Shown: positions 35,402 through 61,903, counted from the first letter of the stretch. The stretch: DNA of 64,000 nucleotides from Klebsormidium nitens (GCA_000708835.1 DF237165.1:1-64000), one strand, 5' to 3'. Notes: generated by a model from the sequence alone, not told the origin. Program-made: numbers and translations.

Positions 35402-38400
35402 TCAGTTTGCCAGCATGGCAGGGGAGGGGAAATGGTCCATGTCGAAGAACGGGCTCAAGCCGTCAATCGCCTCTGGGCATTCCAGGCTCTGTGCGTAGTG
35501 CTGGAGCGCGGCCGCGGCCGCGAACACCTCGTCGTCGCTCAGGTTGTTGACGAAACGCGCCCCGCCGATACCGCTCATCAGCGGCACCCGCTGCAGGCCA
35601 TCGCGCGCGATAGTCATATCGCGGAGCCCCTGCATAAGAAGCAACATTTCTCCACGTTAGTCCAACTATTAGACTACAGCGCCTCCGTTCGGACAACCAA
35701 ACCGACGACGGACGGACACATAGTAGGAGCTCTGATACAAAACGATCGTGGTCCTAGCCGAAGAGCGCGTCAAAACACATCTTCACTCCGCACGTGAACG
35801 TGAAGCAGAAAGCCTGTCGAGACCTTCACTTCATAGTCACCAGCGGATTCAGTAATCGAAGGGCCACAAAAACAGTGTGCGCGCACCTTGATCAGCAGTT
35901 TCGGGGTGACGGAGGCGTGCCAGAAGGGCAGCCGAAGCGCGCGCATGATGGCGAACACGCGGCGCTTGTGGTCGGCCGTGATGTAGCCGCGCCGGTGGGC
36001 GATTTCGGTGGTGAGCGCCATGTCGATGTTGACCGCCTCGCCGTGCAGCAGTTCGTCGTTGGTCTCTAGCGCCGCCATCTCAATTTCGGGGGAGAACGTA
36101 TGGCCGTAGTCGACGACACGTGTCAGCACGTGCTCGTACAAGTTGCACTCGAGCTCCTCCAGCATACCCTGGATGGACCGCCGCAGCACAAGGCGCGCAG
36201 CGGGCGTCTGCACGGGAATACGATTGTGGTTAGATACAAGCCACTTGGTTGACACTTCACAAGCCGGGTTGTTGGTTATGGTGTTTGCACCGCACACAAA
36301 GATTTCGCCACATTATCACTCATCCTAAGCAACTCCGAGGACCTATCCTCGTCAAGCTTGAAAGGATCGTCGAAGTTCGCTGAGTGGATGCCGAAAAGGC
36401 GAGGCAGACCTACGCCATTAAATTCGAAATCTGCACCATGAAGGCAGCATTCGCCAGAACGTTATATGCGATAATCCAGCTTATCTGTCTTCGTCCCATA
36501 TTGCCTCACCTGGAATCTGGACGCAATGAGCTGCGCCGAGTGCTGCTCGAGCATGTGGAAGAGCGGCGCGTCCTTAATGGCGGCCATCTTCAGAATCTCC
36601 GCGGCGCCGTTGCTGAGGTGGCGGTCGTCCAGCGTTTTCAGGAACGCGCGGTCGTAAAACACACCGAGCGGCGGGCAGTATGTGCCCAGCTTGTTCTTCT
36701 TGTTGTGGAAGTTGACAGCAGTCTTCACGCCGATCGACGCGTCGACAACGGCCATCAGAGTGGTCGGGATCTGCCCAAATTGTGGAGTAACGTCAGCTAA
36801 CCGTCGAGGATCGGTGAATCCTAGTGTACCGTTCACACCGTTCCGGTGAATCCTAGTGTACCGTTCACACCGTTCCCGTTCAGTCGCAGATCTGGCGGCT
36901 TCTTGCTCGGCGACGGATACAAAGGAAATGATAATGAAGACAAGGATTTGGGTGACAGGGATCGAGTCCGCCTGCTCCCGAAGACACATGCAACTGTTAC
37001 GCCCAGACCTTTGTAGTAAGCGAAGGCCGAACTCTCATGAACCGAAGGCCAACAATTCCCAAAAAGGAGCAGACCATTGACATGCTTGCTTATGATCCCC
37101 ACCTTAATGACGGGTGTGTTTCGTCGGTACAGGTTCGCCGCCAGCCCCACGACGTCCAAACACACCCCACCTCCGATGGCAATCAGTGGCTCCCGTCGCC
37201 TGGGTCAAACGGAAGGGGCTCAGCCTCTGGCAAAGAGGGCGTTATCAGTCGAAAGGCCGTGACTTGCACAATCACAAACTTACGTACATAATCATCAATC
37301 GCCTCGAAACATGCTATGCAAGTACATCGCGATGTTAGTAACACTCGTCAAGCAGACTACATCTCGTAGATATCCTCATACCTGTGCAGTTTGAAGTCCT
37401 CAATCTGCTGAGCAACCTCGAACACGAGGTCGAAGCTCTTGTTGGCCTCGCAGAACGGCAGCTGGATGATCTTGCTCTCTACCCGGTGGTGCTCCAAGTA
37501 CTGCACCATCACATATTTACGGTCAATCATAGGGTCATCAACAGTTGCCAACTTAAGACATAGTCATCCAGAAAGCACGAACTGAGAACCTGACTGAGAT
37601 CAAACAACTGATATTGATGAGTATAGTCTCTAACTCAGACCAATCTTATGAAGTTGGACAATTAACAACCAGCCAAAGTGCACTGTTGATGACCAGAGTG
37701 CACTGTTCATGACAACCCATCAGAATTGTGCGAGTCTGACTTCACAGCGAAGGGACTGATGCACAGGAAATACCAACTTCTGCGCACCTTGTCTAGCTTG
37801 GCACCGTGCAACCGGTACCAGTTCTCATCAACAACCAGCAGTCTTCTCAGCTGCTTGCCAGCACTCCTGGTGTAAGGGGCCACCTGGGGCGGGAACGTGT
37901 TGGGCACGATGCCTGACAGCAAGGCCTGGACAAAGAGGGGGTCAATTAGTGTGGCGACGCGAGGGTTGTCAGACCTGTTGTTGAACAATAATGTACCTCT
38001 CTGTATGTCTTGAACACAGGTCTGCCTTTCCTGTGTCTGTTCACAGTGCTAATCACAGGATTCACAGTGTTGATCACACTGGATTCACGGCGCTAGTCAC
38101 CGGATTGCAGCGGCAATGGTGACTTCCAAGCACATGAGTAAGCTGTGAACCAATCACTGAACATTGTGATGAGGACAGCAGAATGACAGGTTAGTGAACA
38201 TTGCTTACCATGTTGGAAGGGTTGAGGAGATCCTCGCACTCCTCTACGCTATACATGATGGGCTGGGTTGCCTGGACCGTAAATTTTCCCTGGAAACAAA
38301 AAAGATCTGTTGAGCACGTGTCTGCATGCACTAGCTGTTCATATGCAGAACTTGTGCCAACTCCCTTCCAGAGATGCTCTCAGCAACAAAATTACAATGT

Positions 38401-39407
38401 CTTAAGTACCTTCAGAGCCTCTGCACAGAAGAACAATGAACCAAGACCACTTACTGTGTGGAGACCCTTGAGGCCTGACCCCAGTTCACCAGTCAGCCCG
38501 CTGTCAAGAACAGAAGCCTCCCTAAGGTCAGGGAGTGGCTGCGCCTCAACAAAGGGGCGTGGAGGAGTTGCCACCGCACTAGGCTGCTGCACTTTAGGCG
38601 CCCTTGATAGGCTGGCAGATCTGAATGGACAAGAGCAGAAGACTGTCAGAAGGGTCTGCCATGTCACAACATTGCATCACAGTGCTACTGAAATGTGAGA
38701 CACACCACCTTCTTCGCGGCGCCCTGCTAAGGTAGGATCCTGGAGCTATGAGACACTGTAGTGGAAGCCCTGGATGGGTGATTGAAGTCTCAGATAATTC
38801 TGACAGGGACCACTGACAAACCAATGACATTTGAGAAGTCAAGGAGGTTGCGCGTCCTTAAGAATGATACTGACAACAATCAGTTGTGAAGTAATGCTGT
38901 CCGTTTCATCAGGATCACCAGACCGTAGTTGTTTGCCTCTTCAAAGAATTGCCTCTTCAAAGGATTGCCTGTACAAACAACATAACTCCTGCCCTGATAA
39001 CAGCAATGCTGAAGGTACTGTTAATGATGACACTTGACCACTTCATGGATGAAGGATCTGGCGCTTAGCATGCATGCAATGCCCCTCAAGGGAAACATCC
39101 TGACAGCCAGCCACTTTAGGATGATCTGGAAAGCGCCATGGCCTCAGAGCTCCCGTTCTACACAAACTAGCTGCAACGCCCCTCTTCTATGCCCATCAAC
39201 ATAAGTGAGAGGTTTGCAGACCCACCCTTGAGCGATAGCCCCCATTGGAAGTCCTACAAACGAGCTATTGGCAGCTCGCTCTAAGTTGACACCGCCCATG
39301 ATTGTCGGGGCCGCCAGAGCCCTCCCAGGCCGGGAGCCGCTCATCACGGTGTCAAATGGCTGGCGCACCACACCGCCAAATGTCTGCCTTGCGCAGACGG
39401 CGTCCAT
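35402..39407 (-). CDS. eevs: 2-epi-5-epi-valiolone synthase-type sedoheptulose 7-phosphate cyclase (DHQS-like; gadusol/mycosporine ring formation) with N-terminal extension
   Basis: Spliced product contains GKFTVQATQPIMYSVEECEDLLNPSN, RRLLVVDENWYRLHG, EANKS, RREPLIAIGGGVCLDVVGLAANLYRRNTP, IPTTLMAVVDASIGVKTAVN, KNKLGTY, NGAAEILKMA, GMLEELECNLYE, RVVDYGHTFSP, LLHGEAVNIDM and RDGLQRVPL. Exon 1 is 39407-39226 and its phase matches the next exon. Confidence 0.92.
36812..36875. repeat. Exact 32-bp tandem duplication in an EEVS intron
   Basis: CGGTGAATCCTAGTGTACCGTTCACACCGTTC x2. Confidence 0.95.
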
Positions 39408-39739
39408 CTTGCTGCCTGTCTAGTTGATTTCTCGTCTTTACTTTTTGACTCGGCTCCCAGAATGTGGGTTTGGAAGAACTTGCTGCACCGCTGTACTGCG
39501 GAAGGGTAGCCTGCTGGACCGGAGTAGACTACCTTTGCAGCGCCAATTCCTGGCGGCTCTGCTGTGCACGATGCTCGTGATGGTAAGCCCTGCTGGTGGA
39601 TCAGCTCAGGTGGCGAGCGGAGGAGCAGTGCTGAGCTGGATGCTAAGGGGCGGAAGAAGAGCTGGGAGCTTACTTGATCGAGCAACTTGCAGCAAGTGTG
39701 CTGGGGAGAATGCAGCAGGCAGATCCCCTATATCCTCCG

Positions 39740-41100: not shown

Positions 41101-41315
41101 CTTGTGGAAATCGGTTGAAACATCGACACCGACAATCCCCTCATCTCCTTCTCATTGATGGCCCTAATAGAATTCACAAACCTTACTTCACGGTCCTCGC
41201 AAGCAAAGTGGTGACTCGGGTAGTTTGACTTGAACTGATATCACTTTTGCCCTAAGAAGAAGCAAGATTTTTCCTGCAAACACCAACTACTACTTCCTAG
41301 CCCGCACAGAACATA

Positions 41316-44300
41316 ATGCCGGCCCCGGCGCCCCCATCCTCTCTGCCTCTGTCCGACCAAATGAATGGCAATGGGGCTGCCCAGCCTAAAGCCGGGACCC
41401 CGGAGGGTGTGCATGCAACGGGGCAGCCTGACACGCCCATCGAGGTGATCACCGATCTGCTGCAGAGAGCAATGACGGGCAACTCTGTTGAAGAGGTCAA
41501 AGGGGCAGTGCAGAAGGCGCTGGCAGTAGCTGGGGGGCTGGATCCCTACTTGGAAAAAGTATCTAGCAAGCCAAGCGAGGTAAGCGAGCAGGCTCTCTGC
41601 AGGGGGCCCGCTGAACAGAAATGTGGATTCTCAGCCGTAATGCCACCACCTCTCTGGAGCACAGTCATGGTCTGATGGTACAGATGCTGATGAGTGGCAC
41701 TTCTAGATCTCTAGGAGGGCCAGGTAAGTGGCAGGTGGAGCTCAAGCCTTTCAATGAGGAAAACACACAAGATGCTGTTTGAGCAATTGTCTTGTTCAGC
41801 AGGAGGCAATGAGGAACTGTGAGTGTGAGGGTTCAAGGGTTGCAATGGGCAGCTTCTAGGGTTGGCCGTCATATCGTTCGCACAGGATCAAGCTCACGAT
41901 GAGCTTGGCAACTGCTTGAGTTCTGAATGATCCTGACAGTCGCTGTTTTGTGGGTATGAATTGCAGTTAATCAACGAGCTAATTACAGCTTCAATGAACG
42001 CCCCGTGGAGCGACTTCCATGCCCAGGTTCGCAACACACCCTGGTTGACAGCTGTCTCTTTATCAGTAGATCCCAAGAGTAGCAGCATGCTCTGCCAGTA
42101 TCCTGATCCTTCGCACACCATCCTGGAACCCTAATTTGACTGTGAGGAGTCTGACACTGGTTGCTCACCTCTTCCATGAATACCTCTGGCTGCGCCGATG
42201 CTGAAGTTTTTAGGTCAATCTGTCGGTCCTAAAAGATCTCCAATGCTGGCGGCTGGTACAGGGCAAGACCATCTTCAAGCAGAAGAAGGAGTGCTGCGCG
42301 GGCTCCCTGGAGGGCCAGTTTCTGAGATCTTTGGTCCAGCTGACACATGCCACGTCCGTATTGGAAGTGGGCATGTTCACGGGGACCAGCACGCTCGCCA
42401 TGGCCCAAGCACTGCCCGATTTTGGCAAGGTAGGAGAATTGAGCTTGGACTGTCACGGTATCTTCTCTCAAGATTTCTAGACTGTGCTGGCTTGTGATCT
42501 TCCACATGCTCTTGACAGAGCTTGAGCTCTAGACTTACCAGATAATCCAGGGGAACGATTCAGCTAGGGTTATGAGACCTAAGCCAAACAGACGCTAGCT
42601 TGGGCATCTTCTATCCGCCAGCCAATGTCAACAATGTGACCATTTATTATTCTCGAGAGATTGTCTTTTACATAAACCTTGTTTTCTTGGAGTCTCTATC
42701 TATAGCATGGGCAATTAGGGTTTTGGGGTGACATACTTCCAGAATGGGCAATTAGGGTTCTGAGTGGTAGAGCACTTTCCTGACCCACTTGATTCGTTGT
42801 CCAGGTTTATGCACTTGACATCGAGCCCTTCCTCAAAGAGTTCACTGCCCCCTACTTCGAAAAGTCTGGCCTACAGAACCGCATTGAAGTGGTGGTAGGC
42901 CCTGCCAATGAGTCCATTGAGAAGCTGGCCCAGCGGGGGGTGCGCTTCGACATTGCTTTCCTGGATGCGGATAAGAGCGGCTACCTGGGCTACTACAAGC
43001 AGCTCATGGACAATGACCTTATTGTGCCCGGGGGCATTGTGGTCGTTGACAATTCCCTTATGAAGGTAGTTACCCACTCTAATTTCAGGACTTTGCAGCT
43101 TTTGGTTTTGAATGCGTTTCCCACTCATCAAAGTGAAGCAATGACGATTCAGAAGCTGCGGGTTAAAGTTAGATTCAGTGGCTTAAGGCGGCCCAATCTC
43201 TGAAGTATTGCCTGAGGGACCATGGATTGTCTGAAACTCGTGCTCAGAACGGTAATTTTTTTGTGTGCCAAGCTGAATCACGCTTTTTTGTGTTAGCCTG
43301 TTTCCTCGACCTCACACATTAGGGTTTTAGGGGCTCAAAGCGGAGTCTCAGTTGGCAGTTCTTTGATTGATATCGTCCTGACTGTCAACGGTACGCTTTT
43401 CCGCTCCTTCGATGGTCCGTTTACCACTCCCGTTCTTGTCCGCGAGCAGGGCCGGGTGTACGCCCCGTCCGAAGAGGACGAAATGGCGGACGCGATTCGG
43501 GAGTTCAATGAGTACGTCAGCAACGACCCTCGAGTGGAGGTGGTGGCCATCCCGCTCAGGGACGGCATCAACATCGTCACACGCCGGTGAGGCAGCTATC
43601 TTACCGGTAGCTTTTGCGTGAGCGCCGGTGAGGCGGCTATCTTTACGTGAGGACCGCTTTATTACAGGATTCACGTCTGCTGCTGGCCCTAATTGTATGT
43701 CTGAAGCCTGAATTACAGAAAGTGCCATTTTCTTCAATTTTGGCAGGCACCATGAGTTGGGGTGCTGTTTTGCAACACGAAAGTTTCGGCGCTAAGATGC
43801 CGGACTTCGGATGAATTTGGAACTCTCAGCTCTATTGGTCTGATTCGGAAGAACGACATTGCCTCAGTGATCGGTTCTGGTTTGAGGACCACGCTTACAA
43901 ATTATTCTTGATTGTACAGGCCCGTGAAGGGGGACGAAATCGTGACGGGGGTGGGAAGCTCCAACATCTTGCAGCGGTTCAAGCTGGTCAGCAAGGTCGC
44001 GCTTATCACAGGTGAGTTTTGCCAGACACAGTGAAGGACTCTCTATCTCTACGCTGTTGTCTTCGTGCGGGGGCTGTTTTCCGTTTCCACGATTGCGCTT
44101 TCCTGTCGCTTTCCGTCTTGACAGCGAGTGCTCGGTCACACCGTGTTCGTGAACTACACCTGCCAGGGCGTTCAGACCCGCTCTGACGCCACAAGTTCAG
44201 TATGAGATGATGAAGCAAGACAAGCGAGCGGTTTCCTGTTGTTAAGAGGCCCCTTTCAGTGCCAACGATGATCTACTCGCTTCTCAAGCCATCAAGACAA

Positions 44301-46092
44301 AGTCCTTCCCTTGCTGGGCTCTTCCGATTGCCCATTCGTCGCGCCTGCTGTTTGCAGGGGCTGGGCAGGGTATAGGCCGCGCGTTTGCGCACGCTCTCGG
44401 GGAGGCCGGCGCGGCGGTGGCTGTGGTGGACATCAATAAAGGCAAAGCCGAGGAGGTGGTTGCGGAGCTGCGGGGCAAGGGCATCCGCTCGATCGCCATC
44501 CAGGCGGACGTAACGCAGAAGAAGGACTGCAAACGGTGAGGGGGCTGGGGTGTTTTTGAAACTGTGGCTGGAAGATTTCAATTTGGATCACGCTCAGTCT
44601 CTTGTGAGCTTGGTCGGTAAGCAACTAAACCCAACCCAATTGGGACTTGGCTTACAGTCGAAAGTGCTGAGTCGAGACAGTCTGGTAGAGCGAAAGCAAG
44701 TGTCGTAAAAGACTTCATGACCCGAGGAACGGCAACAAAATGCAAACAGACTTTTCAGAAGAAGTCAACAGGACCTTCGGGTTTGAGCACATCTAAGGCT
44801 TGCTACATCCCTCGGTGGGTGCAGGATGGTCGACGAGACGGTGGCGGCCCTGGGCGGGCTGCACATCGCCGTGAACAACGCGGGAATCAACCGGAACGCG
44901 TCGGCAGAGGAGACGTCCGAGGAGGACTGGGACGCCACCTTCTCGCTCAACACCAAAGGCGTTTTCATGTCCTGCCAGGTGCGCCAGTTTGTATTCATCT
45001 TTGGCCTCGTCAACTGGCCGTGGCACCTTTCGGCCAACCTCTCAGGATTTGCGAGACGCAGCGGCCGTTTTTATTCCGTAGGCAGGGCTTTCAGAATTTG
45101 ATCAGCCATACGGAAAGAAACGACGCGTTGTTCACGACAGGGAACATAGGTTGCGCCGTGAGTAAATCTGAGAATCTAATGCGGGTCAGCGCCTGTCTGA
45201 TTACATGATCAAGTTGGGTTTTTGGCAGTCTTGCTTTCTGCAGCTTCTAGCTTTATGGATTTCCGAGTGTCATCGCACCCTTCTCGCACCACATCCATCG
45301 CTACAAAGCGACGATAATGTATTTCATTCCTATATGGCTGTGGGTTGATTTTCACTTTCCCCACAGGCGGAGGGCGAGGTATTCCTGGCGCAGAAATACG
45401 GCAAGATCATCAACACGGCGAGTATGGCGACGCTGCTGGTGCCGCACCCGCAGAAGCAGATCGCGTACAACTCATCCAAAGCGGCGGTCGTGAAAATAAC
45501 GCAGACGCTCGCGTGCGAGTGGGCGGACCGGGGGGTCAACGTCAACTGCATCTCGCCGGGGATCGTGGAGACGGCGCTCATCATGGTGAGGAACACGTGA
45601 AATCTAACTTCGCCCGCCGGCAGGTGCACAAATCGCGAAGTAGTTAGAGCGTTTCTTCTCTGCAGCAGATCCACAGAATGGAGACACGGTCTCGTCTCGA
45701 CTGAAGTTCCGTTGGCAAGACTCTGCCCAACGAGACACGTGCAAAAACCTTATGGGGTTGCGCACGTCACTTTTGCCTGCGAGCGTGCGATCTTGTCTGA
45801 AATATTGTAGTGCTCCCCCGTTTTCCAAACACGCTACACCTCAGGCTCAAGGGTACTGGAGAGAACTTCCGCAGATTCGACCGCAAAGGATCTTGACGCG
45901 CGCCTCTGCTTCGTTCTGCAGGAGTCCCCAACTCTGAAGCCCCTGGTGTCGGAGTGGCTGTCCCAAATCCCCAAGGGCCGCCTCGCATCAGTCGCAGACC
46001 TCCAAACAGCCATTGTGTACCTTGCTTCGGATGCTAGTAACTACATGGTCGGGCACAACCTCGTCATCGAGGGCGGTCAAAGCTTGTGGTAG
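41316..46092 (+). CDS. mt-ox: Bifunctional methyltransferase-oxidoreductase (MT-Ox): N-terminal CCoAOMT/MysB-like O-methyltransferase fused to a C-terminal SDR
   Basis: MT motifs: [71 protein letters not shown]. The phase-2 intron 43587-43919 joins in frame to [63 protein letters not shown] and [13 protein letters not shown]. Confidence 0.88.
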
Positions 46093-47460: not shown

Positions 47461-48334
47461 ACATGTCCTGTAGCTAGGACGACCTCCTCTTCTTTCAGCT
47501 GCTGTGCATGGGCGTCAACGGACTAGGTTTGTTTTCTCAATGACCACAGGCACTCTCACTAGTGGCAGAGAGCGTTGTGAATAGCACGCGTGCGCCGTGG
47601 TCCTTATCAGCGCCATTGTTCGCTCCTTGGGCATTTGCATCTAGTCAAGGGAGCGCTGACCCTCATTAACAGCTGTTTGTGGGCGTCTTGGGCTGGTGAG
47701 CACACACATGCCAGCTGCCTAGACCGATGACGGGATTTTGTATCTAAGAGCACTCTCGTAAGCCAGAGTGCATTGTCAAGCACCCTACTGGTGCCCAGTC
47801 GTTCCGGTCCAGGTTTGCAATGATCACTGGTGCTATGTTTCTAAATCTTCGTGTCTTCGGTGACAAAGGTTCGTATGCGACTGTGAAGCTCTAGGAACCT
47901 TTGGCTGACGCTGCCTCTTGGTGACCTCGTACCTGGGTCCTGTGATCCATGCAGCGTGAATTGTGCAATGCAGCATCCTGAAGAGATGGCTGCCTCTGGT
48001 TCATGATGTCGCGAGGTCAAATTGCACAATGTGGTAGTTTAAACAGTCTAGATATCAAAAGTTGTATCAGCAACCGTGGCCAGCTGTTCCAGTGGGCCCG
48101 GTGATATTCTTGCAGTAGCTCACTGCTCACTATAGATGTGCTGAACTTCTCACTTCCCTTTGCCATTGACAAGGTTGATCGTCTGCTAACACCAAAAAAG
48201 TAAGCCCAGCTTCAGGAGCCAGCGATCATCTGGCGGTGTAGCCCAATCGATGGGTCATGGGCTCCAAGAGCACCAAGAGCGTGAGGCTTTGGCGGTGGTT
48301 TAACATTTTGTTTTTTCTTCGCAGACATTGCATC

Positions 48335-51300
48335 ATGGGGTCTTTGGCAGACGGAGTGGAGCAGCCTCAGTGGATCAAGGAGCTGCTGGAGATAGCGCCG
48401 TCAGCAAGGAATAAGGTACGCCTCGGTTGTCACACCGCTGGTTCTTCTCCTCATGCAGTGGCAGTCTGCTGATTGTGGCAGTCTGCTAATTGTAACATGG
48501 ATTAGGGTTTGTGGCTACCCTGCCTTGTGTTGTCCTTCCGCTGTCATTGACGGAGCACAAAGTTTTCTCTGCACCTTATGCTGTGCAGACTCTTCTTCCA
48601 ACTGACATACTCCTAGACAACACTCACTGGGCTTCTGAAAACAGGATTGCCAGTCATTTCAACAGGATGTGATTTTCATATGCGCAAGGCTGTGCTGCTT
48701 TGTTTGAGGAGGCACGTTTTCACTGGACATGACTCTCTGGTTGCAGGAGGTCCTTGAGGTGATTACCGGCAACGCTGCCGCCCGCGCCCGCCGCAACGTC
48801 TTTTTGGCGCGCATCACACCAATGCAGAAGCTCCAGGCCAGAATCAGGAGTCTCATTGCGCTGTGCCTGTTTGCATGGTCGTTCCCTGCCACAGCAGCCG
48901 TCGTGTTCGTCCGCTGGCTCCTGCATAAGCTTGTGGGCAAGCCGGAGCCAAGGGTCCGCCCAAACGGCCCCAGGAAAACTCTCGTGCTTACAGGTGAGCC
49001 ACTGGGCGGTCAGCATTGACAACATACACGAATCTGCAGCTTGGGCGCTATTCGCATTCGATACACTAAACATGGAAGGTGGATCATGGACTTTCCAAGT
49101 ACATCTCCTGGTTGTGATTCAATTGGAGCAAGCCAAGCCATCAGCAAGTCGCTTACATCCCGCTCCTTGGACCCCTTCTAATGTTCAGTTCTTCAGTGAG
49201 TTCCTACAATCAGTGAGGCCCTTGCTCTTGGTCTGCAGTCCATCTCCCAGTGAAACCCTAAAACCCGAACAAGGTTGAACTTTTGCTCCAGGTGCCAAAA
49301 TGAGCAAGTCGATGCACACTGCCCGCCACTTTTCACGCATTGGGTGGCGCGTGGTGGCAATTGAGCACCACAAGTACTGGATGTCGGGGACGCGCTTCTC
49401 CAACTGCGTCGATGCATTTCACACGGTGCCCCCGCCTGATGTGGATCTAGTAGGCTATCTTAAGGCAATGCGGCGGATCCTGGCCAAGGAGAAAGCGGAC
49501 ATCTACATGCCCACCTCTACCGCTTTGCTTGAGGTAAGAGGCGGCATCTTTGATCAGAGCCGTGGATTCAAGAAAGCCTTGTCCGCTCTAATGGTTGATG
49601 TTCAGTTTCGCATCTTCGAGTCCAAGACAAAGTCCGTTGTAACAGATTTTCCAAGTTTGCCATAAGCCTCCGCTTCTGCTTTACCTCCGCCCCTTTGTCT
49701 TCGGATTCATCGTTGAAACTCCCAGAAGATGTCGTTGAATAGCGAATTGACACTTCAGGCCGCCCCCCATCCGGAGATTCTGAGCTTCAGCATTACCAGT
49801 GTGTCTGCGACGCTTCAACCCTCTGAAGCCGGATTTGGATAAGCCCACGCGTTCACCAGGGCTTCGTTTTCATCAGCTCGCCGTTATGTTGGACTGCTCA
49901 ACGAAACAAGCACACGACTCGGTCCAGATTTTCAATTGGTTTTCCTCGCTCCTTCCAAGCCACGGTCTTCCAAGAATTCATCCCGCACCTTTAATCAAAG
50001 CTTTAAAGCTTTGCACGCAACTGGTGGGAAAGATATTTAGTCGAAGCATAACCTTGGCGACGTTGGCGGTTGCAGGTGTACGACGCTCTAGTTCTCGACG
50101 TACTTCCCCCCGGGTGTGTCCCCTGGACGCTCGACGCGGCCACAACGGCACAGCTGAACAACAAGGCCCGCTTCAGCGCGCTCTGCCGTGACGTCGGCGT
50201 GCGCTCACCTGCCTACTTCCACATCGCCACTAAGCAGCAGCTGCTTGACTTCAACAAGAAGCCCGAGATCTTCAAAGGGAAAAGGTAAGGCTCGGGGCCC
50301 ATTTAGGATTTCCTTTGCCGAATCTGCACTGCCGAGAAGATTATTCAAAGTTAAGCCTCTCATTCGATGGTGCAGTAGAGCCTCACGATGGAGTTTCAAA
50401 ATTGGGAAACCATCGGATGTCTTCTTCGTTACAGCAGGAGGTGAATAGGGACCAGGGGCAGCCGAAGATGCCGTGAAGCTGCCAGTTACTCTAGCATGGC
50501 AATCTCGGATGCCGTTCTTCGACCACTCGAAGCAGCATCCATGATTGGCTCCTTAGCGACTGATGGTCAGGAGCTTACCTCCCGCGCCACAACCTTCTCC
50601 CTTAATCCTGCCTTTTCAACGAATCTTCTTTAACCTTCCGCGAAGCTACGTACTTCTTTGAGCTGCTTGGGCTCGTCCTGAAACCAGTAATTCCGTTTGC
50701 TCCAGGTTCCTGCTCAAGAGCATCGCGTACGACTGCATCAGCCGGTCGGAGCTGTTCACACTCCCGTGCGACCAGGCCCGCCTAGAGCGCCACGTGGAGA
50801 GCATTGATTTGGACCCGACGCACCCGTGGATGCTGCAGCAGTTCCTGGAGGGCGTCGAGTACTCGTCGTACAGCATCGTGCACCGCGGCCGCGTCGTCGC
50901 GCACGCCGACACCAAGGCCGAGCTCAACAACTTCAGATACGGACAGGTGAGCGCGCGGGCCGCTCACGTGGCGGCTGTGAGAGGAGAAAGGCGGACTAGA
51001 TATTGCGCAACGTCTTGGGATCTGAAAGCTCATAAGCATGCTTAATGCACTCGTGGGCCTTGGAAGTGTCGCAAGTTGAGGCCCTTCAGAAAACGCGACG
51101 TCTAAATCCGATGTGTCTTCATGTGCGAGCAACAATGTGGCTTGGAGGGTCGGGTCTCCAATTTCCTCACCTCATCTGCAGGCTGAACTCGGTGGCGGCC
51201 TGGCGCCATTCAAAGTTTTGTCGTTCATCGGATCTGTCTTCCCGACCCGAACTTTGTTTTCAGCTGCCACTGGTTGTTCTGATTACTATCTTGCCTATGA

Positions 51301-52363
51301 GTTCGCAATTGCGCATACCTACTCGAGACCTCCCTTCCGGATCATTTCGTCAAACTGACCCGGAGCAGCTGAACGCTGGAAGCTCAATTGGTTGCCCACT
51401 CGATCCCCTCAGCCCATCTCCCGCCTTCGCCGCAGGTGGACTCCACGCAGATGTGGGAGTGGGTGACCGCTTTTTGCGCGGCGGGTAAATACACGGGCAA
51501 CCTGTGCTTCGACTTCATCCAGGACACGCACGACGGTTTGCTGTACCCCACCGAGTGCAACCCGCGCATCAGCAGCATCAATACGCAGTTCCACGACCAC
51601 CCCGCGCTTGCCACCGCCTTCACCGACCCGGAGGTGAGGGCTACTATCTGATCGGGATCGTCCGGAAAGTCGCAAGGCGCAAGAGCGTGTCTGGAGGTCA
51701 TGAGCATTGGAACGTGGCTGTTACGTCTCAGACATCTGTTTCGCTCCCAAAACCAGCGAAAAGGATGCCCCGAAACCTTATTTCTGATGTTCTTCGTCCT
51801 TTTTATGCACTTGCACCAGCGTTGACTTCCTGGCAGAGAGCAGCTGCCCGGAAGTCCCGAACATTCAGCAAGACTGCTCTCACTCTTCTTCCGGAAGTCC
51901 AGCTCAACTGTTCGCTCGCTGGCAAGATCCCTGAAGATCGTCATTCCACCTTATCTGAGACTTTGTCGTCGTTCCCATGACCCTCGTGTTTAACAAAACT
52001 TTCTTCGAAGCTCCCAAGTATCTGGACGGAGTGAATCCCATTTGCGCCTCACTGACTCTCCGCGTGTCCCTGTTCTGCGCGCAGTCGATCGGCAAGTGCC
52101 TGAAGCCCATGCCCGGCAGCGCCCACATCTACTGGTGGTGGGGAGAGTTCTGGACGGCCGTGACAGGCGGAGATTATGCTACGTGGTGGCACCTGGTGAC
52201 GGCCGGCAAGGACGGCGTGTTCGATCTAGACGACCCGCTTCCGTTCCTCTTCTACAACTACCTTCAGATTCCGGTCCTACTGATGCGGAACGTGTTGGGC
52301 GGAAACCCCTGGAAAAAGATCGACTTCTGCATCGGCAAGCTGATTGAGATGTACGGAGACTAA
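48335..52363 (+). CDS. mysC: MysC-type ATP-grasp ligase (mycosporine amino-acid ligase)
   Basis: KTLVLTGAKMSKS, HKYWMSGTRFSN, LLKSIAYD, PWMLQQFLEG, LCFDFIQ, TECNPR, DDPLPFL and terminal WKKIDFCIGKLIEMYGD match the cyanobacterial MysC pattern by recall. Seven coding exons have GT-AG borders. Confidence 0.92.
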
Positions 52364-52925: not shown

Positions 52926-53130
52926 GAGAATTCTTGGATTGTTAAAAGTAGCCGTCGTTCAATGGAGTCTTCTCTTTAGAGAAAATAGCAGCGAAGTAAA
53001 TTTCACATCGGATGTACGCATCTCCGCTTACAGCGTTTACCCCGTCATGTCAGAGGGCTAAACCTTTCGAGCCCAGGGCAAAAAGTGAGTTTATCGGCGC
53101 CTTAATACCTGCTCCCCACTGCTTTGTAAT

Positions 53131-55595
53131 CTACTTCGTTTGCTTGCGCACTCCTAAAGCGACTGCGCTCCAGTCGAGCCCCTCTTTGCCCTCTTCCTTC
53201 AGCCCTTGCAAATGGCGCAGCATAGTCTCCGCTGTCGCCAGGGGCACGCCAGAGTTCTGCCCTAGCCGTACGATGTGGCTCACGTCCTTGATGCCGTTGA
53301 TGACGGGCGTCCCGGGCCTGTCCGCAGTGCACTCAAAAGCGTCCGTCGTGATGCGGTCGAAGTTGCGCTGCAGGAAGGAGCGAGACGGCGTGTGGGTCGC
53401 GACTGTCTGGCGTGCTTGTGCAGCAATCTTGGGGTCGTTTATTCTACTGTATCGCGACTCCAGAAAAGGCAAACACAAGAACAGGAGAGAAGAGTTTCGA
53501 GCGTCGGGTTTCGCTACTACGCAGGCTTTAGAATCCCGTGTAACCTTTCCCCTTGTCCTTATCATAAAGTAAGGCGCAGCGTTTAGAGAGGGCCTGTTTT
53601 CATGCATGATCGGGAAGAATTTGGGGAGACAGCCCAAAAGTCGCTTCTGGCGAGATCAGCCTGAACGAGGCAACCGCGTTTTCGAGAGGGACGCAAAAAT
53701 CTCCCTAAGCGGCACGGACAATCAAAGAATGGCTAACTGGTGCGGGTGCTCTCGAACGAACCTCGACGATAGGAGAGGGGTACAGCAGGTTGAGCACTTC
53801 CAGGACAGCGGACTGCGGGATGTTGTTCCGGTCGGCAAGCGCGGTGCCTTCCGCGATGAGTTCGATCATGCTCGAGACGAAGAAGTTGCCGATCAGCTTG
53901 AGGGCGCCCGACGAGCGCGCTTGATCGCCCACGTCGAGCACGCCCTTTCCGATGGCCTCCAAATACGGCTTGGCCTGCAGTCATTATAGAATGGTGTCGA
54001 AGTTGGCTACAGGCTCGGATCAGAAGTAAGCTTCGGAATGCAACGGAGGGGAACGGTTGACGGACGGCTGAGCTAGTCAATCGTGCGGGCGATTTTCTCA
54101 ACACGTTGGGGGCTCGAGAAAGGTCTAGCAGATTGGCTGCAGCTCCCATCCGAAGGATATGCCTGTCCCTTATCTTGAGCAACTCATAGCTTGGGGATTG
54201 AGAGTTTCACGTTCAAAACCTTCCCCTTGGAGCTTGTGCTGAAAAGACATCACTATATATCGATGTAAACAGCAATAGAATTGAGACCCACTAGTTGTTC
54301 GTCGCTTTTTCATCTCGTACCTGCGCTCTCGACTCTGCGTCCCCAGCTGAGACCACCAGCAGCTTTTTGTCGGCAGCGGCGCCCGGGCCTCCAAACACTG
54401 GGCAGTGGATGAAGTGTACTTCGGCTAGCTGGCCCTTCTCAGTCAGCTCCTCTGCAGGAAACAATTGCACATTCACGAGATGATATCTCCACATAAAACA
54501 TCAGGATGCTGCCAGCCTCAGGTCACTCTCGACCCGCTTTGACCAATTGTGCCCATCAACTATTGGCGGGGTGACGACTGAAGGATACGATTTTGAATGT
54601 GGGTCAAAAAATGGAGTAGCCGCATTCTTCTCCACTTTCGACAAGCATTAAAGACTGGTTAAAGATTCGTTGCTCAGCCTCTGCTATCGTCTTCTTCAAT
54701 TGTCGCCCAGAGATGTGGTATGAAGTGTATTGCTCACCTGCGGTGGTGGGGTAGATAGTGCTGCAGTCGATGTAGAGGCTCCCCCTGCTGGGCTTCCCCT
54801 GGAGGTACTCCCCGAAGACCTCCTGCACCGCCGCGTCATTTGCCAGGCACGACATCACCACCGAGCATTTTGCAGGCAAGTCGCTCGGAGAATTGACGAG
54901 AGTGGCACCCTTGTCAACCAGGAAGGAAGCCTTGTCCTTTGTCCGGTTGCTTACAAAGAAGGGTCGGCCCTCTTGTTGAGTGTAGGCGAGGAGGTTGGCA
55001 GCAATCCCTGGAAGATTGCAAGGACGGCGGATTTTCGTTGATGGAGTGGTGGTACGTAAAAACTTTTGACTAATAAGACCGCTTGGCCCGCTCTGCATTG
55101 GAGATTGAGAAGCGAAACCCGATTTGACTGTGCCCATTTCATAGTAGAACATCAAACTTTCACAAGGGATGTCCGGGGTGTACGTAACTTCATGACTGTA
55201 GGAAGGATGGTTCCCAATGAAAGCTGTGTCAGCCTTATGAATTTTGAAACAGCATTGTCATTGGTGTGCACCATCAAGAAGGCCAGCTATGCTGCTAGAT
55301 AACTCAGGAAGACTGGTTCCAGTTTTGACCCTCATGCTTTTCTCAGAAAGCCTAATGATCGTACAATTCGGACCTGGTCACAAGGGCAACAATGCGCGAC
55401 GCGCCTGCATAACGCCAAACCCTAAGGTCTCGTTTCTTTTGCCCACCACACCACCCCCGCTGCTCAGCATCGATTCAAATGACAGCTCCAGAGCGTTGTC
55501 ATGATCTAGGCACCGCTACAAATGACCTCACCTTTGCCCATGGCCCCAATCCCAACATAGCCCACCCCGTTGTTTTCGTGCGAGGTCTCAGCCAT
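53131..55595 (-). CDS. NAD(P)-dependent beta-hydroxyacid dehydrogenase family oxidoreductase (6PGDH/3-hydroxyisobutyrate dehydrogenase-like)
   Basis: MAETSHENNGVGYVGIGAMGK-GIAANL (Rossmann GxGxMG), VSNRT, VVMSCLAND, YIDCSTIYP, HCPVFGG, GALKLIGN (catalytic Lys) and KDVSHI. Five exons. Confidence 0.88.
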
Positions 55596-56149
55596 TGTGC
55601 TCGATGCTACAACAACGCGCCTAAAACCTTGAGACGAGACCCTACCGAATCTTTGGACGTAAACAAATATCAGTTTATGGTAAGAAGCGCCAGCAGCACA
55701 CTAGCTAGTGGCTGTCAGTTCCCTAACTTAGCTGGACTTGGCTATAATGTGGGCTGCCTGACTTTCTAACACTTGATTGCAGGACTGGCCTGACACAGCG
55801 TTCTCCAATGATAGTGACAGCTTATCTAGGCAAGTTATATTTCAGTATAGAAAAGCAGTAATGCAGCTAGTGAGGCCTGTAATTATACTTTGTTCAGGCT
55901 GGAAAGCCTGTCTCAGAAGAAACGGATCCTTCCAACAAAGATCTTACTGACTCAGTGATTGATCGCAGGAAGCTCCGAACCTGAAGCTGCAGCTGAGGTT
56001 GGCGCTAGTCTCAGGCAGTCGCCCTGAATAAGACGGACTTTCTTTTGGATCTGTGGTCAGGATTTCCTGTGCTGCACCTATGAAATAGAAGGTAGGTCGA
56101 ACTCTTGTGCAACATGTTCATGCTGGCATTGTTGTGCCGTTGCCAGATG

Positions 56150-56910
56150 GTCTTTTTCACCTCAAGTAAGTTGCATGCTGAAAATGCGAACACGTAAGCG
56201 CTCTCCTCCTCCATTCAAATACCTACACAGGTGCGGAGGCTGGAGCCGTACTTTTCCTTCATGTACGAATCTGTACCAAGCCCTCCCACACTTTTCTGTA
56301 CGGATACCCGGTACGTACCGGAGATGTGCTGAGATTGGGTACAACGCAGGTACAAAGCTTCTCTAGAGAATTAGGTAGGTACATAGGTAGGAAGGTACAT
56401 CAAACCATATGTACAAGGAAACCCTAACACGTTGAAACAACTTGAAAGTATCTTCTTTACACCTGCCTGGGTACAGTCCGAGTGCGCGCACCTACCTATT
56501 TCACCCCAATGATCCGGTCATCATTACGCAGTTGACCAGCACCCGGTCAGGGGCGCAAATTGCAATGTCACATGTGCATTGTGCATGCGTTCACCCCGGG
56601 TGTCGTGCTACCTAGCAGGATTCCAGGAATCCGGGGGAATCTCCCTTCCATGATGAGGGAGCCATACAGACACGTCCACCTGGCATACCAGTACCTTGTC
56701 GGCCCTTTTCTCTGCATGCATTGGGGATACGTCACACGGAAAGCAATAAAGCCCGCCATGCAAGGTCAAATACAGGTAAAACCGTGATTTAACCGACATT
56801 GAGTACTCTCTACCATGTACAGCCCGGGCACTCAGCCCTGATGATGCAGATTGTGCATTGGTTCCAAAGAGAGAAGCTCTGCGCGTTCATGTACGGTAGG
56901 TACCTACCTA
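56150..56910. promoter_or_regulatory. Bidirectional promoter region (dehydrogenase / second methyltransferase) rich in GTAC/GTAGGTAC
   Basis: 8-mer hits at 56375, 56896 and 56900, plus many GTAC. Confidence 0.55.
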
Positions 56911-57810
56911 GGCATTGCGGGAAGCTGAGCTAAAGCACGGAGTTTTAGAAGCCAGACGTCATCGCAAGCTGTCAAACAAGTTCCCGAGACAAGAGACTGA
57001 TCAGAGAAGCCGGCGTTTTGTAGCACATTGCTTTCTGCAATCTACTTGCATCGAGCCTTCCAGCTCTACTTCAACACAATCCCGCTGGTTCCTTCGATTC
57101 AGTGTGGTGGTTGGCTCTTGTGCAATAGCAAGTATTCAAAGCTCTGAAGTACGTGCATTCCTTGTTCTTGCAACCCTTTGTGTTCGTGACTTCAGTGTTC
57201 AGCATGGCTCCAACTACGCCTTTCGGGGATTCTGCAACAGCGCAGCCAGCAGGTGAGCTGGAAGAGAAGCAAAACCAATGTCGATGAAGACCGTGACGTA
57301 AGCTGAATGCAGGATTGCGCATGATCGCAAGCAGCCTTCTGCTTGGTCCTCTCGTAAGTTTACTTCGTGATGGTGGTGCCAAATCCAGAGGAAGGCCAGT
57401 GCAAAGCGGAAGGAGATCTTTGATGCCATCGATATTGAGCAGAAATGAGTCTCGTTGAGCTCAGAGCTGATGCCAGTATGCCATATCTGCAAAGTGTTGT
57501 GCTTCGTGCTCACACTCCGGGCTATTACTAGATCTGGCCGCTGCGCATCTGGTCGAAATAATGTGTTTACCCAGCATCTAGCAAGAGTTTTTTGCTCATC
57601 TGCAAACAAATTCTCAAAAGCAATGTGGAATTTCAGCAGAGGCTTTACTCCTCTCCGTCTGGAACACAGCCAACTGAGCTCACTGTCCTCCAAGCAGATG
57701 ACGCGCGGTGACTTTGATAACAGATGAGCCTCTCGCAGGAATGTATGGTACATGATGAGCAACTTCAGGCGCCTTGATCTTTGGATTGTAACACAGTGTA
57801 TGAAGCGAGC

Positions 57811-60800
57811 ATGATTCCTGCCTCAGGTGCAGCCAATGGGGCCAAGCGCACCACCGAGATCTCTGGCTATGAAAGCGCATATGCGAAATCATCATCTAGT
57901 GGCAGTGTGGCCATTGGTAAGTGCGGACTTTGTGTACACCTTTGACACAGCACTGCTTTCTTTGTGAAAGTACTGGCAGAACTCTTTTGAGCAGTGTCAG
58001 GGGGGCCCGATGACCCATCTGCTTCTAAAGGTATAGAGTATGAGCCCTTCGAGTGAGCTATGTTCTCCAGATCTGTTGCTGTTTCTACTTGAGCTGTGGT
58101 GAGTGCGCACTACCCGAGCTTCCAACAAGTTGCTTGCTGGAAATGGTTGCTCGCTATGTCGAGAATGTGTATCCCTGTCCAGAGCTCAAGGAATTCTTAA
58201 GTGATGCCAGTGTGACTCTTTTTGGTGCAGCCCGCGTGTACGAGGCGATTCAGGGGCACTGGTACAGTGCCTGCCTCGGCGTTCTGCTGGAGCTGAACAT
58301 TGCGGACATCCTTGAAAAGGAGACCCAGCCCATCTCTGTTGAGGATGTGAGTTGCATTCTCAGCTGTCTAACCTGGCAGAAGACAGGGTCAATGATTCCA
58401 ACGAAGCCAGGTTTGCAGCACTTCAACGATATGAGCCGCTTCCTTTGATTCCAGTGGGGCAGTTGACATGTTGTAACACTCGAGTGCTCAAGCCAGTGCA
58501 CCAGCCTGCTCTCAAAGAATGCAGTTCAGCGCTCCACAGGTCTTTTTCGCACCGTCGGATTCTGAAGAATTTGTATGCCCCCAACAGATGCTTGGTCCCA
58601 TAGCGGTTCATCATTTGCAATTGCACGGATGGGCACAATGCATCCAGCCAGCTCTGAACTGACGGTTCTTTGTGGTCATCACAGCTGGCCAAGAAGTCGG
58701 ACGTGTCTGCACCTGGAGTAGAGTACTTGTATAAAGTGCTGAGGGCGCTAGCGCAATGGGGGATCCTGGACGAGGAGGCAGGTCAGAACCCTAATTTTTC
58801 AATGATGGCCCCTGAAAGCATGATGCCCTGCAGCTAGGAAATTGTTTCACAGATCTCCGAAGTTGTACACCTTTTGGGAGACTTCTGTGGTGCACTGAGC
58901 AGATTACCTTCACCTAACATAGATTCTGCCTTTCTTCTGCCTTTCTAATTTGTGCGCAAAATCTTCCCTTTTTCGTCAGTGAGCATCTTGTGATTGTTGC
59001 CTCAAGTCCTTGGTATAACGAACCTGATATGGCCAGGTATAACGAACCTATAATAACGAGAACGGAAGGAAAAACAAATTAGCAAGACATTGTGCATTTA
59101 AGAGGTTCGATGCCGTTTGCAGACTTAGCATGGGTCACCTCGCGGTTTGACTTTCTCAAGGACGGTTGTTGCAGGCAAGAAGTTCTCGGCCAATGACTCC
59201 ACCCGGCAACTGGTGCGTCCCCCCGGCCAGCCGACGCTGGGCCACTTTGCACACCACCAGATCAACCAGCCCAAGTGGGACGCCTGGAAGGTCCTGCCCG
59301 AGGCAGTGCGGCTCGGCAAGACGCCCTTCGCGGTGGCGCACGGCACCGACATGTACGGGGTAAGGTGCCGCTGACAATACATGATCACGCTTCCAAATGG
59401 TCGTGAGAAGCTGCTTCGAGATGTCCGATTTGCGAAAGATAAGCAAGCAACGAAAGGAAAAGGTCTCTTTTGTCGCTGAGAGGGAACGTAAATTGGATCT
59501 TGTTGCTACTTAGATCTGGCTTGAAATATGGTGGGCCGCTTATCTCCGTGTCGATCAGCCGAAAAGATGATTGACTTCCAAAAACTTCGTGGTCAAGATT
59601 CCTCGTTTACAGGCCTTCTTCCTCCGTTGTACTAACGTGTGGAAACAGCGAAAGCAGAAAACTAATTCAGGAGCCGATGTGGGCACTCCGAGCTGTTATA
59701 CGACTTTGCTCTTGGCAGGTCAACGCTCCGGGGACCGGGCCTCCTTGTGAACGCAGTTGGGCTTGTGTCTATTCCAAAAACGTGAAACCCCCACGAACAA
59801 AGTTTTGTGGTGTTCTACGCCAGACAGTTGCCTCGAATATTGGCATCGCTCAAGGACCCGCTCTGTCTCCTTACCCCCAACAGCATCCTGCCCTTCCACG
59901 TTTCCCCCCTGGTTTTCTCTCAAGCTTGAAACTTTACACCTTTCCTTCCAATTCTTGAAGCCCCCGCTTCTCCTTTCCCCAGTATGACAACAAGCCCGAG
60001 AACGCGGCGTTCCACGAGGAGTTCATGCAGTCAATGACCTACTTCACCAAGCACAGTCTCGACGAGGGGGGCCAGGTCACGCTTAAGGATGTGTACGACT
60101 GGAGTCAGGTCGGTACGGTGATGGACGTGGGTGGCGCGCGTGGCGAGCTGCTGAGCCGGTGCATGCTGTACGCGGGGGAGAAGGCGCGGGGGGTGCTGCT
60201 TGATCGGCCCTTCGTGGTCGCCAGGTAAGAAAGAAAGAAAAATGGGGGTGCTTGAGCAGTATTGTTGGCGCAGGATGGTGCTCTGTTCAGAGCTTGCACG
60301 GGAGATTCTCGGGCCGTCGGCTTTCGACCTTTTTGGAGTGGACCCTTATGAGCTTGCGATTGTGGGGACGGAGAGCCAAATCAATCAATGTGAGCAACCT
60401 GCGGTCGCTTGGTGCGTGGCAACAGTTTCGCAATCTGCTGAAACCTAGAATGAGGAAGTTGGACGTCCTCTCCTTCGTGCGCTCAAGCTCTCAGAATCCG
60501 TCATTCAGTGCCACTGCCCAAAAAACATTTCTGACTGAAGCAGAGACGAAGGGATCTGAGTACAGCTACGTTCCGTCCTGATCATCCTGACCAATGCGCT
60601 CAACGGATGGGTCTGGTCTTCAACATGCCGAGGGCATCTTTCTTTTTGCAGCGTCGACGTAGACGCCACGTTCGAAGCGAAGGGCGTAAAGTCCGCGCGC
60701 GAGCGGCTGTCCCTGGTGGGCACGGAGGATGTGCGGACGCCCTTCCCGGACGCCGTCAAGGCCGCCCACGTGGACACGATCATCATGAAGCATTTCTTGT

Positions 60801-61903
60801 CCGGATTCACGGACGACGACGCCCGGATCGTGCTCAAGCATTGCGGGGAGGTGCTGGAGCCCAACGGGAAGGTGCTGCTGCTGCAGGTGGGCTTTTGAGG
60901 ACGGGACATCTACTGTCTGAACTTTTGGACCTTGAGAGCCCTTGACTGATGAAGGGCAGCAAAGGGTCTCCGTACAGCAGAAAGGTGTTTCAGATGAGAA
61001 GACGTTCCGCAGTTTGTGAGTCAGGGTTGAGGAATCAGTTTAGAACGAGACGTAGTCGCCTTTGATTCTGAACAATTGGTCGTTGTGGACCTGCGCCGTA
61101 TTGGGTTTCTTGGCGGTCCTTATCCTTCTCGCTTATTTGATCAGGGGCTTGTTGCAGTGACCTTTGCTGCCAAGTCAGTCATTCTGAGCCCTACTGCGTA
61201 TTTTGTACGGGAAACTTCGTTTCATGTCATCAAACTGGTTCATTTGTATCATCTCATGCTCAACCGGTTGCCCAGCCAATCAGGCTCTCAAAGGTGAAAT
61301 TGAGTCTCAACCCCTTCTTTTCGCCTCGCGCAGACCCTCGTACCGGAGGCCGGCGATAGGACCAACAATGTCTGTGAAGACGGAGTGGCCCCGGGTAAGT
61401 AGATTGACACGTCATTACCCGTCTTTATCCTCTTTCGTTCGCCCTCTCTATCACGAGGCTGTACATTCTTAGCTTTGCTGATCAAGTTTGCTGGGAGAGC
61501 TCTGATTTTAATCTCCTTTCTCCCAATCAGATAGCTGCCAGCTTGGAATCTGTTTCTTACCGGTTTTGCTTTATTTTGGGCGGCTTTCTGGCCTTTGACT
61601 TCTCTTTGTCGGTCACCAGAACGGATTGCAGCCACCATATTGTCCTACCGAAATTCCACTCCTTCCATTAAGTCCGCTCCATAATTCTTTCTGCCGTGGC
61701 ACGAAGGTCGAAAACCTGAGCTTCTTACTGTGTCTTCTCGTTTCCCAGGTCTGTTCGCGATCGAGATCCTGGCCATGTGCCCGGGCGGCTCATGGAGGAC
61801 GCGCAGCGAGTGGGAGGAGATCTTCGGGTCGCAGAGCTTCAAGCTGGACAGCAGCAAGCCGGTGGGGCCCAACATGCACCTCATGGTGTGGAGCAAGCAG
61901 TAA
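57811..61903 (+). CDS. Class II SAM-dependent methyltransferase with dimerisation domain (COMT/ASMT/PhzM fold; O- or N-methyltransferase)
   Basis: LELNIADIL and LYKVLRALAQWGIL (winged-helix dimerisation part), GKTPFAVAHG, VMDVGGARG, LLDRPFVV, IMKHFLSGFTDDDARIVLKHC, PNGKVLL and GGSWRTRSEWEEIF. Stop TAA at 61901-61903. Confidence 0.88.

Follow-up and report, generated by a model that had tools for sequence, protein, structure and literature searches.

Mycosporines with a gadusol core (klebsormidins, prasiolin and algasporine-glycine) are UV screens of terrestrial green algae near the land-plant lineage. Klebsormidin B was described as N-(4,5-dihydroxy-5-(hydroxymethyl)-2-methoxy-3-oxocyclohex-1-en-1-yl)-N-methylserine and klebsormidin A as its serine-O-hexoside, and gadusol was detected in extracts as a klebsormidin degradation product (Hartmann et al. 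2020; PMC7118736). An N-methylglycine analogue is likewise present in Klebsormidium (PMC13312787). Klebsormidin is UV-induced. At the genetic level, genes for an EEVS-type cyclase, an MT-Ox fusion, an ATP-grasp protein and an O-methyltransferase were found clustered in K. nitens, Chromochloris and Coccomyxa, and the cluster was interpreted as a hybrid, arisen by natural evolution, between the vertebrate and the cyanobacterial pathway, with klebsormidin A as the proposed product (Foflonker and Blaby-Haas 2020; PMC7826186); in the supplement of that work, kfl00216_0060 is listed as EEVS and kfl00216_0080 as ATP-grasp. No biochemical test of the cluster pathway was found in full-text searches for papers after 2020. 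The locus analyzed here occupies positions 35,402 to 61,903 of a 64,000-nucleotide stretch of Klebsormidium nitens DNA (GCA_000708835.1 DF237165.1:1-64000; the whole stretch is referred to as the window), and is most probably the green-algal cluster for gadusol-core mycosporines. Its gene order and many RNA runs identical to the window make it almost certainly the kfl00216 neighbourhood of this species.

The window consists of eukaryotic DNA with approximately 52% G+C and numerous short exon-like open reading frame (ORF) pieces. Between 35.4 and 61.9 kb, it carries five adjoining enzyme genes, every one interrupted by GT..AG introns, in the following order and orientation:

35402..38379, minus strand: EEVS-type sedoheptulose-7-phosphate cyclase gene (Pfam, PDB matches, splice-site enumeration, congener blocks); modelled exons in ascending order, gene 3' to 5', 35402-35629 (with stop), 35887-36207, 36510-36770, 37103-37199, 37382-37500, 37788-37925, 38209-38379
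41316..46092, plus strand: MT-Ox gene (Methyltransf_3 O-methyltransferase plus SDR oxidoreductase), 547-aa nine-exon model (Pfam, colinearity); modelled exons 41316-41579, 42262-42429, 42805-43065, 43450-43586, 43920-44011, 44358-44535, 44825-44978, 45367-45585, 45922-46092
48332..52363, plus strand: MysC-family ATP-grasp ligase gene (NF005315, tblastn, family profile, congener blocks); core exons 48709 or 48747-49008, 49292-49533, 50076-50284, 50688-50946, 51436-51633, 52085-52363 (stop)
53000..56220, minus strand: beta-hydroxyacid dehydrogenase gene of the HIBADH/6PGDH NAD-binding family (spliced RNA contigs, Pfam); RNA-derived exons, 5' to 3', 56220-55531, 55006-54738, 54451-54320, 53973-53762, 53367 to 53000 or below; coding sequence (CDS) 55595 to 53131, 304 aa (RNA-derived ORF)
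56221..56863, no strand: interval of approximately 640 bp between the divergent 5' ends of the dehydrogenase and Methyltransf_2 genes (RNA contig ends, 4 runs)
56864..61903, plus strand: MysF-like Methyltransf_2 gene (COMT-type, with dimerisation domain), 409-aa nine-exon model (RNA contigs and profile-scored splicing); exons 56864-57252 (ATG 57204), 57827-57916, 58231-58346, 58685-58782, 59176-59359, 59983-60224, 60652-60886, 61334-61394, 61749-61903 (stop)

The limits of the locus, 35402 and 61903, correspond to the final bases of the stop codons of the cyclase and the methyltransferase, respectively; transcripts reach past the CDS limits, and the RNA contigs of the methyltransferase start near 56864. 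Expression and splicing were evidenced by RNA for two of the genes, the dehydrogenase and Methyltransf_2. The original prediction, made from the sequence alone, had claimed five contiguous intron-bearing enzyme genes, and domain matches on the exon pieces bore out all five. Its further statement that this five-gene architecture was undescribed does not hold, as four of the five genes and the hybrid idea were already reported for K. nitens in 2020 (PMC7826186), and the numbering of kfl00216_0060 and kfl00216_0080 fits the order cyclase, MT-Ox, ATP-grasp seen in the window. The dehydrogenase is the only gene of the locus outside the published set. Since the cluster and its interpretation have been known since 2020, the value of the present analysis is confirmatory; new here are the RNA-supported models (the dehydrogenase and the first exons of Methyltransf_2), the MysF placement and the data on the dehydrogenase.

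Most probably, the locus makes klebsormidin through a gadusol route (EEVS plus MT-Ox), a MysC-type ligase and a MysF-like N-methylation; we infer all the catalytic steps, as well as the order of condensation and N-methylation. In the proposed scheme, the EEVS-type cyclase would convert sedoheptulose 7-phosphate into 2-epi-5-epi-valiolone, which the fused MT-Ox would oxidise and O-methylate to gadusol. The ATP-grasp ligase would then activate the gadusol enol and join serine (or N-methylserine), yielding a 6-hydroxy-mycosporine, and the MysF-like enzyme would add the N-methyl group, most simply on the vinylogous-amide nitrogen after condensation, to give klebsormidin B. A glycosyltransferase encoded elsewhere would finally add the hexose of klebsormidin A. 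In favour of this scheme, the gadusol core and the N-methylserine of klebsormidin match the features expected from the four enzymes (PMC7118736), and the same hypothesis was published independently (PMC7826186). The gadusol-type ring and N-methylated serine that the original prediction gave for klebsormidins were correct, as the structure of klebsormidin B attests (PMC7118736). Of the hybrid pathway that it proposed, the gadusol route, the MysC-type ligase and the tailoring methyltransferase are the best supported parts, while nothing supports the dehydrogenase as a tailoring enzyme of the pathway apart from its being adjacent, expressed and conserved in a close relative.

Related loci were compared in order to place this arrangement. 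In one congener contig (L009/L018, 74-91% nucleotide identity), the order and orientation of EEVS (reverse), MT-Ox (forward) and ATP-grasp (forward) are kept, and in another congener contig (L008, 79-87% identity) so is the divergent pair formed by the dehydrogenase and the methyltransferase. A marine eukaryote contig (L005) carries an ATP-grasp gene approximately 9 kb from an MT-Ox gene, and on a bacterial contig (L007) four consecutive genes encode an EEVS-type cyclase, a MysB-like protein, MysC and a MysF-like protein. Clustering across independent lineages was found for the four published genes (PMC7826186 and the bacterial row, with ATP-grasp and MT-Ox in the marine eukaryote), and not for the dehydrogenase, with no counterpart in either the bacterial or the marine eukaryote locus.

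The bacterial row (L007:1304-5880) presented features of its own: its cyclase has the EEVS-like Leu, Asp and His all present, its MysB-like methyltransferase is without an oxidoreductase domain, and two glycoside hydrolase family 32 genes follow the MysF-like gene. The occurrence of an EEVS-type cyclase, instead of the DDGS type, in a mysBC setting may merit attention.

Regarding the first step, the seven-exon core model of the cyclase was built by frame-constrained enumeration of GT-AG sites, and one or more additional 5' exons may lie at 38395-38676 and/or 39147-39419. The exon pieces matched Pfam DHQ_synthase (4.7e-18) and DHQS_C (2.4e-18), as expected for a DHQS-like two-domain fold. When compared with solved proteins, two of the exons gave values of 1.7e-29 and 5.2e-27 with the EEVS ValA (4p53), 9.6e-15 and 8.4e-16 with DDGS/MysA (5tpr), and approximately 1e-16 or weaker with DHQS enzymes; in these comparisons, the cyclase is nearer to proven EEVS than to DDGS or DHQS. 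The active sites of EEVS and DDGS are discriminated by Leu267, Asp281 and His360 (ValA) in the former versus Glu, Ala and Thr in the latter (PMC10666671). In the alignment, the first two diagnostic positions of the window cyclase are Leu and Asp as in EEVS (MLEELECNL and VVDYGH), and the third, corresponding to ValA His360, is Ala (TIARDG), the residue of neither class, so that EEVS-type residues amount to 2/3 and DDGS-type residues to 0/3. Each modelled exon falls on an 89-90% identical block of the congener contig, and the model is colinear with the EEVS-type cyclase of the bacterial contig.

Beside this gene, in the space separating it from the divergent MT-Ox gene, a segment of approximately 1 kb (39214-40221) shares 81% identity with the congener contig L018, above the level of introns, and could hold a shared promoter, cyclase 5' exons or another feature.

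For the second step, Pfam assigned Methyltransf_3 to pieces at 42.2-43.6 kb and, after them, adh_short to pieces at 44.2-46.1 kb. An apparent stop (TGA, 43588-43590) after the methyltransferase domain sits within a consensus donor, G|GTGAGG; the linker exon (43920-44011) contains no Met and encodes the first SDR strand, KVALITG; and the 547-aa model is colinear end to end, linker and join included, with the single-ORF MT-Ox of the marine eukaryote contig. Because of these three features, MT-Ox is predicted to be a single chain that has the Methyltransf_3 domain at its N-terminus and the SDR domain at its C-terminus. Exons 1 and 2 may be separated by a small additional exon. The MT-Ox exon blocks are kept in the congener contig L009.

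Downstream of MT-Ox, a block of approximately 185 nt (46985-47170) before the ATP-grasp gene is ~89-92% identical to the same congener contig, as conserved as exons and above introns (72-78%). A 10-nt indel makes it improbable that this block is plain coding sequence, and no Pfam or Rfam match was obtained for it.

With respect to the third step, five successive pieces (49.3-52.4 kb) matched NCBIfam NF005315 (PRK06849) at consecutive model positions, and the exons were also located by tblastn with full-length homologues. Pfam ATP-grasp models gave no match on single exons, and the NCBIfam model and a custom family hidden Markov model (HMM) were used instead. An exhaustive search with one exon recovered full-length relatives. 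When one of these served as the query in turn, the family proved to include both Cz11g05110 of Chromochloris zofingiensis and the characterised MysC of Anabaena variabilis, Ava_3856. The assembled protein scored 469 bits against the HMM built from the MysC family, and was 47% identical to Cz11g05110 and 34% identical full-length to Ava_3856 (E 4e-88, residues 34-488 versus 21-458). By alignment it is a full-length homologue of the Ava_3856 MysC family, and it is predicted to couple an amino acid to the enol of (deoxy)gadusol at the expense of ATP. The protein has an N-terminal hydrophobic segment or extension ahead of the ATP-grasp core, and a first exon with an ATG near 48332-48457 is possible. 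The exon blocks are kept in the congener contig L009. Two of the homologues (P0003 and P0010) were transcript-derived and gave no genomic context, and searching the PDB by sequence brought up no solved MysC.

A database protein of 492 aa (P0030) matches the Methyltransf_3 exons of the window along residues 20-153 and the ATP-grasp exons along residues 219-467; it is either a natural methyltransferase/ATP-grasp fusion or a gene-calling merger in another organism.

The fourth step would depend on the Methyltransf_2 gene. Exons 1-4 and the start of exon 5 (59176) were obtained from Logan RNA contigs (4 runs) that match the window exactly, while the rest of the model was derived by enumeration of GT-AG sites and frames, scored against an HMM of 120 cyanobacterial MysF-clade proteins. 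The best model reached 262 bits against this HMM, and the translation of its 61-nt exon restores the family motif LLLQTLVP. Pieces at 58.0-61.9 kb matched Pfam Dimerisation and Methyltransf_2 weakly because each piece is short, and the exon blocks are kept in the congener contig L008. The relationship to MysF was reached through the bacterial row, whose last gene product shares 67% identity with an ORF carried by Nostoc sp. UHCC 0926 on its plasmid pn1. Immediately downstream of this ORF are genes for a TauD dioxygenase and a nonribosomal peptide synthetase; the ORF is MysF of the mysFIE module, predicted to N-methylate the C3 amino group of a palythine (Arsin et al. 2023; PMC10510106). A protein search based on MysF returned only cyanobacterial proteins among its best 120 matches. 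In BLASTP comparisons, the window protein showed 31-38% identity (185-232 bits) with the MysF clade versus 24-29% (85-106 bits) with six other bacterial Methyltransf_2 proteins, and in a maximum-likelihood tree it was joined with 20 MysF-clade proteins and split from the same six with 100/100 support, on a long window branch and with a small outgroup containing no plant COMTs. Such a position in the tree agrees with the enzyme contributing the N-methyl group of klebsormidin, N-methylation of the nitrogen of a mycosporine-like amino acid (MAA) being the predicted activity of MysF-type enzymes.

COMT-type enzymes with a dimerisation domain usually take larger, ring-bearing small molecules as substrates, and the clade in which the window protein falls is that of an enzyme predicted to act on the ring-bound nitrogen of a finished MAA; both points argue for methylation after condensation. 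The opposite order, in which the Methyltransf_2 enzyme would N-methylate free serine (and glycine) and the ATP-grasp ligase would couple the N-methyl amino acid to gadusol, is possible but somewhat unlikely. A 2026 preprint (10.64898/2026.08.25.746913) lists the timing of N-methylation versus amino-acid condensation as unresolved, and reports free N-methylserine in K. crenulatum, and free N-methylserine and sarcosine in producing algae, its authors favouring direct incorporation. On chemical grounds, moreover, a vinylogous-amide nitrogen is less nucleophilic than the secondary amine of an N-methyl amino acid. However, the free N-methylserine could equally be a breakdown product of unstable klebsormidins, as gadusol is (PMC7118736).

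Several points weigh against the klebsormidin scheme as a whole. The enzyme functions of the locus are predicted from sequence, the third diagnostic residue of the cyclase is not that of EEVS, and MysF itself is only a predicted N-methyltransferase (PMC10510106). If free N-methylserine were incorporated directly, the methyltransferase would act on free serine or on another substrate. No glycosyltransferase was found among the ORF pieces of at least 110 aa upstream of 35 kb, inspected by eye and, for ten chosen pieces, with Pfam, which is not an exhaustive survey. Data on co-regulation are limited to the presence of both MT-Ox and the dehydrogenase in RNA runs of the same studies, with coded run conditions and contig depths that are not quantitative. 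The predicted nature of all the functions and the atypical cyclase residue could also be taken to mean that the cluster stops at gadusol or at another product, with the ATP-grasp and methyltransferase genes belonging to an unrelated pathway and adjacent by coincidence. This is highly improbable: the same four families occur together in three distant green algae (PMC7826186), an ATP-grasp gene accompanies MT-Ox on the marine eukaryote contig, all the equivalent families are present in the operon-like bacterial row, and the known MAAs of the organism show exactly the features that the four enzymes would give (PMC7118736).

The fifth gene of the locus, the dehydrogenase, was modelled from spliced Logan RNA contigs (4 runs), these too matching the window exactly. 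The piece at 54.6-55.3 kb matched Pfam NAD_binding_2 (2.1e-11), the ORF contains the motifs GIGAMG (dinucleotide-binding), NRT and ALKLIGN (with the catalytic Lys), and it aligns to the PDB beta-hydroxyacid dehydrogenases (beta-HADs) 4gbj, 3pef and 3doj. With its Rossmann GxGxxG and catalytic Lys, the product is assigned by these matches to the HIBADH/6PGDH NAD-binding beta-HAD family. A search of 5.8 billion proteins, word-based on a 107-aa region and of low sensitivity, yielded 10 word-sharing candidates that were scored, two of which passed: a congener fragment (79%) and a fungal protein (30%). The latter, the nearest homologue outside the congener, sits among unrelated genes, and the ESM Atlas returned only generic NAD-binding clusters. 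A reading as an imine reductase or reductive aminase, forming N-methylserine from hydroxypyruvate and methylamine, was dropped because the catalytic Lys is retained, which speaks against an imine-reductase-type variant.

The 5' leader of the dehydrogenase transcript (55596-56220, minus strand) is unusually long, approximately 625 nt, and contains five upstream ATGs. The interval separating it from the Methyltransf_2 transcript (56221..56863) may serve both genes as a bidirectional promoter.

Beta-HADs act on serine and on glycerate-type 3-hydroxy acids, and the dehydrogenase could accordingly be dedicated to tailoring or supplying the serine-derived side chain, in a pathway of five enzymes. 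It might oxidise the beta-hydroxyl of serine or N-methylserine, or it might supply a 3-hydroxy-acid precursor. Oxidation of the beta-hydroxyl might link klebsormidin-type (N-methylserine) with algasporine-glycine-type (N-methylglycine, 275 Da) products, and an N-methylglycine analogue does occur in Klebsormidium (PMC13312787). The position of the gene, between two cluster genes and divergent from the MysF-like gene at ~640 bp from its start, speaks for such a role, as do its expression in the same studies as MT-Ox, the retention of the divergent pair in the congener, and the near absence of close homologues among the proteins searched, unlike housekeeping plant beta-HADs. On balance, however, this role appears unlikely. 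The dehydrogenase is outside the conserved set of the 2020 study (PMC7826186) and is missing from the bacterial and marine eukaryote loci, the context of its fungal homologue is unrelated, and the homologue search was of low sensitivity. Furthermore, congener synteny at 79-87% nucleotide identity is expected for any neighbour and thus uninformative, and no known feature of klebsormidin calls for a dehydrogenase. More doubtful still is the possibility that the divergent dehydrogenase and MysF-like genes form a side-chain module, in which the methyltransferase would N-methylate gadusol-serine and the dehydrogenase would act on the serine beta-hydroxyl, converting, for example, N-methylserine-type into N-methylglycine-type products. 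If true, this would make the klebsormidin pathway a five-enzyme one, with a step undescribed for any mycosporine.

Upstream of the cluster, the window contains the following neighbours:

1200-3300: UbiA-family prenyltransferase, with homogentisate prenyltransferase-like motifs
9700-15700: ABC1 atypical kinase
18331-18933, minus strand: SNARE-domain gene
22100-25500: MFS_2 sugar-type transporter

The sole match at Rfam gathering level in the window was to the tRNA model (29646-29898, 253 nt span, 35.3 bits), a tRNA-like frame with a long insert. Between 27400 and 34200, the peptide motif GRGAPRI(A/D/G)PL(K/I)(D/N)(E/Q)(G/E)Q(N/K)A recurs in several ORF pieces on both strands, which indicates a multi-copy element.

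The locus is an obvious template for reconstituting the biosynthesis of gadusol-core mycosporines, and the transcript-based models, together with the link to MysF, ease the design of such an experiment. The interest that remains lies in the biochemistry, in the MysF connection and in a dehydrogenase of unexplained role.

Among described systems, the closest is the green-algal neighbourhood itself (K. nitens kfl00216_0060/_0080, C. zofingiensis Cz11g05100/05110 and C. subellipsoidea), with which the window shares the four families, the gene order, the proposed hybrid chemistry and the proposed klebsormidin product. Four genes were described there, and the window adds the dehydrogenase between the ATP-grasp and methyltransferase genes; the published work was without transcript-level models or a link to MysF, which was named later (PMC7826186). 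The vertebrate gadusol pathway (zebrafish; Osborn et al. 2015), as summarized in PMC7826186 and PMC10666671, likewise combines EEVS with a two-domain MT-Ox, and gadusol is the expected product of both; the phylogenetic link of the green-algal genes to the fish proteins is taken from PMC7826186. The EEVS and MT-Ox genes of the window adjoin in divergent orientation, and whereas the fish pathway, according to those summaries, ends at gadusol, the window adds an amino-acid ligase and a second methyltransferase. With the cyanobacterial mysABC(D/E) clusters (Anabaena variabilis Ava_3858-3855), the locus shares a MysC homologue (34% to Ava_3856), and with mysFIE of Nostoc sp. UHCC 0926 a second methyltransferase that groups with MysF. 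It differs from these clusters in its EEVS- rather than DDGS-type cyclase, in the oxidoreductase fused to its first methyltransferase and in its spliceosomal introns. The window carries neither MysD nor MysE, and therefore a single amino acid would be attached; in addition, the predicted substrate of MysF is a palythine-type imine nitrogen, in contrast to the N-aryl serine expected in the present case. Finally, the synthetic gadusporines, obtained with fish gadusol genes and bacterial mysC/mysD (Osborn and Mahmud 2019, as cited in PMC7826186), follow the same logic, gadusol being taken by a MysC-type ligase to give 6-hydroxylated mycosporines, although that system, as described there, is engineered and without N-methylation, unlike the locus in the window.

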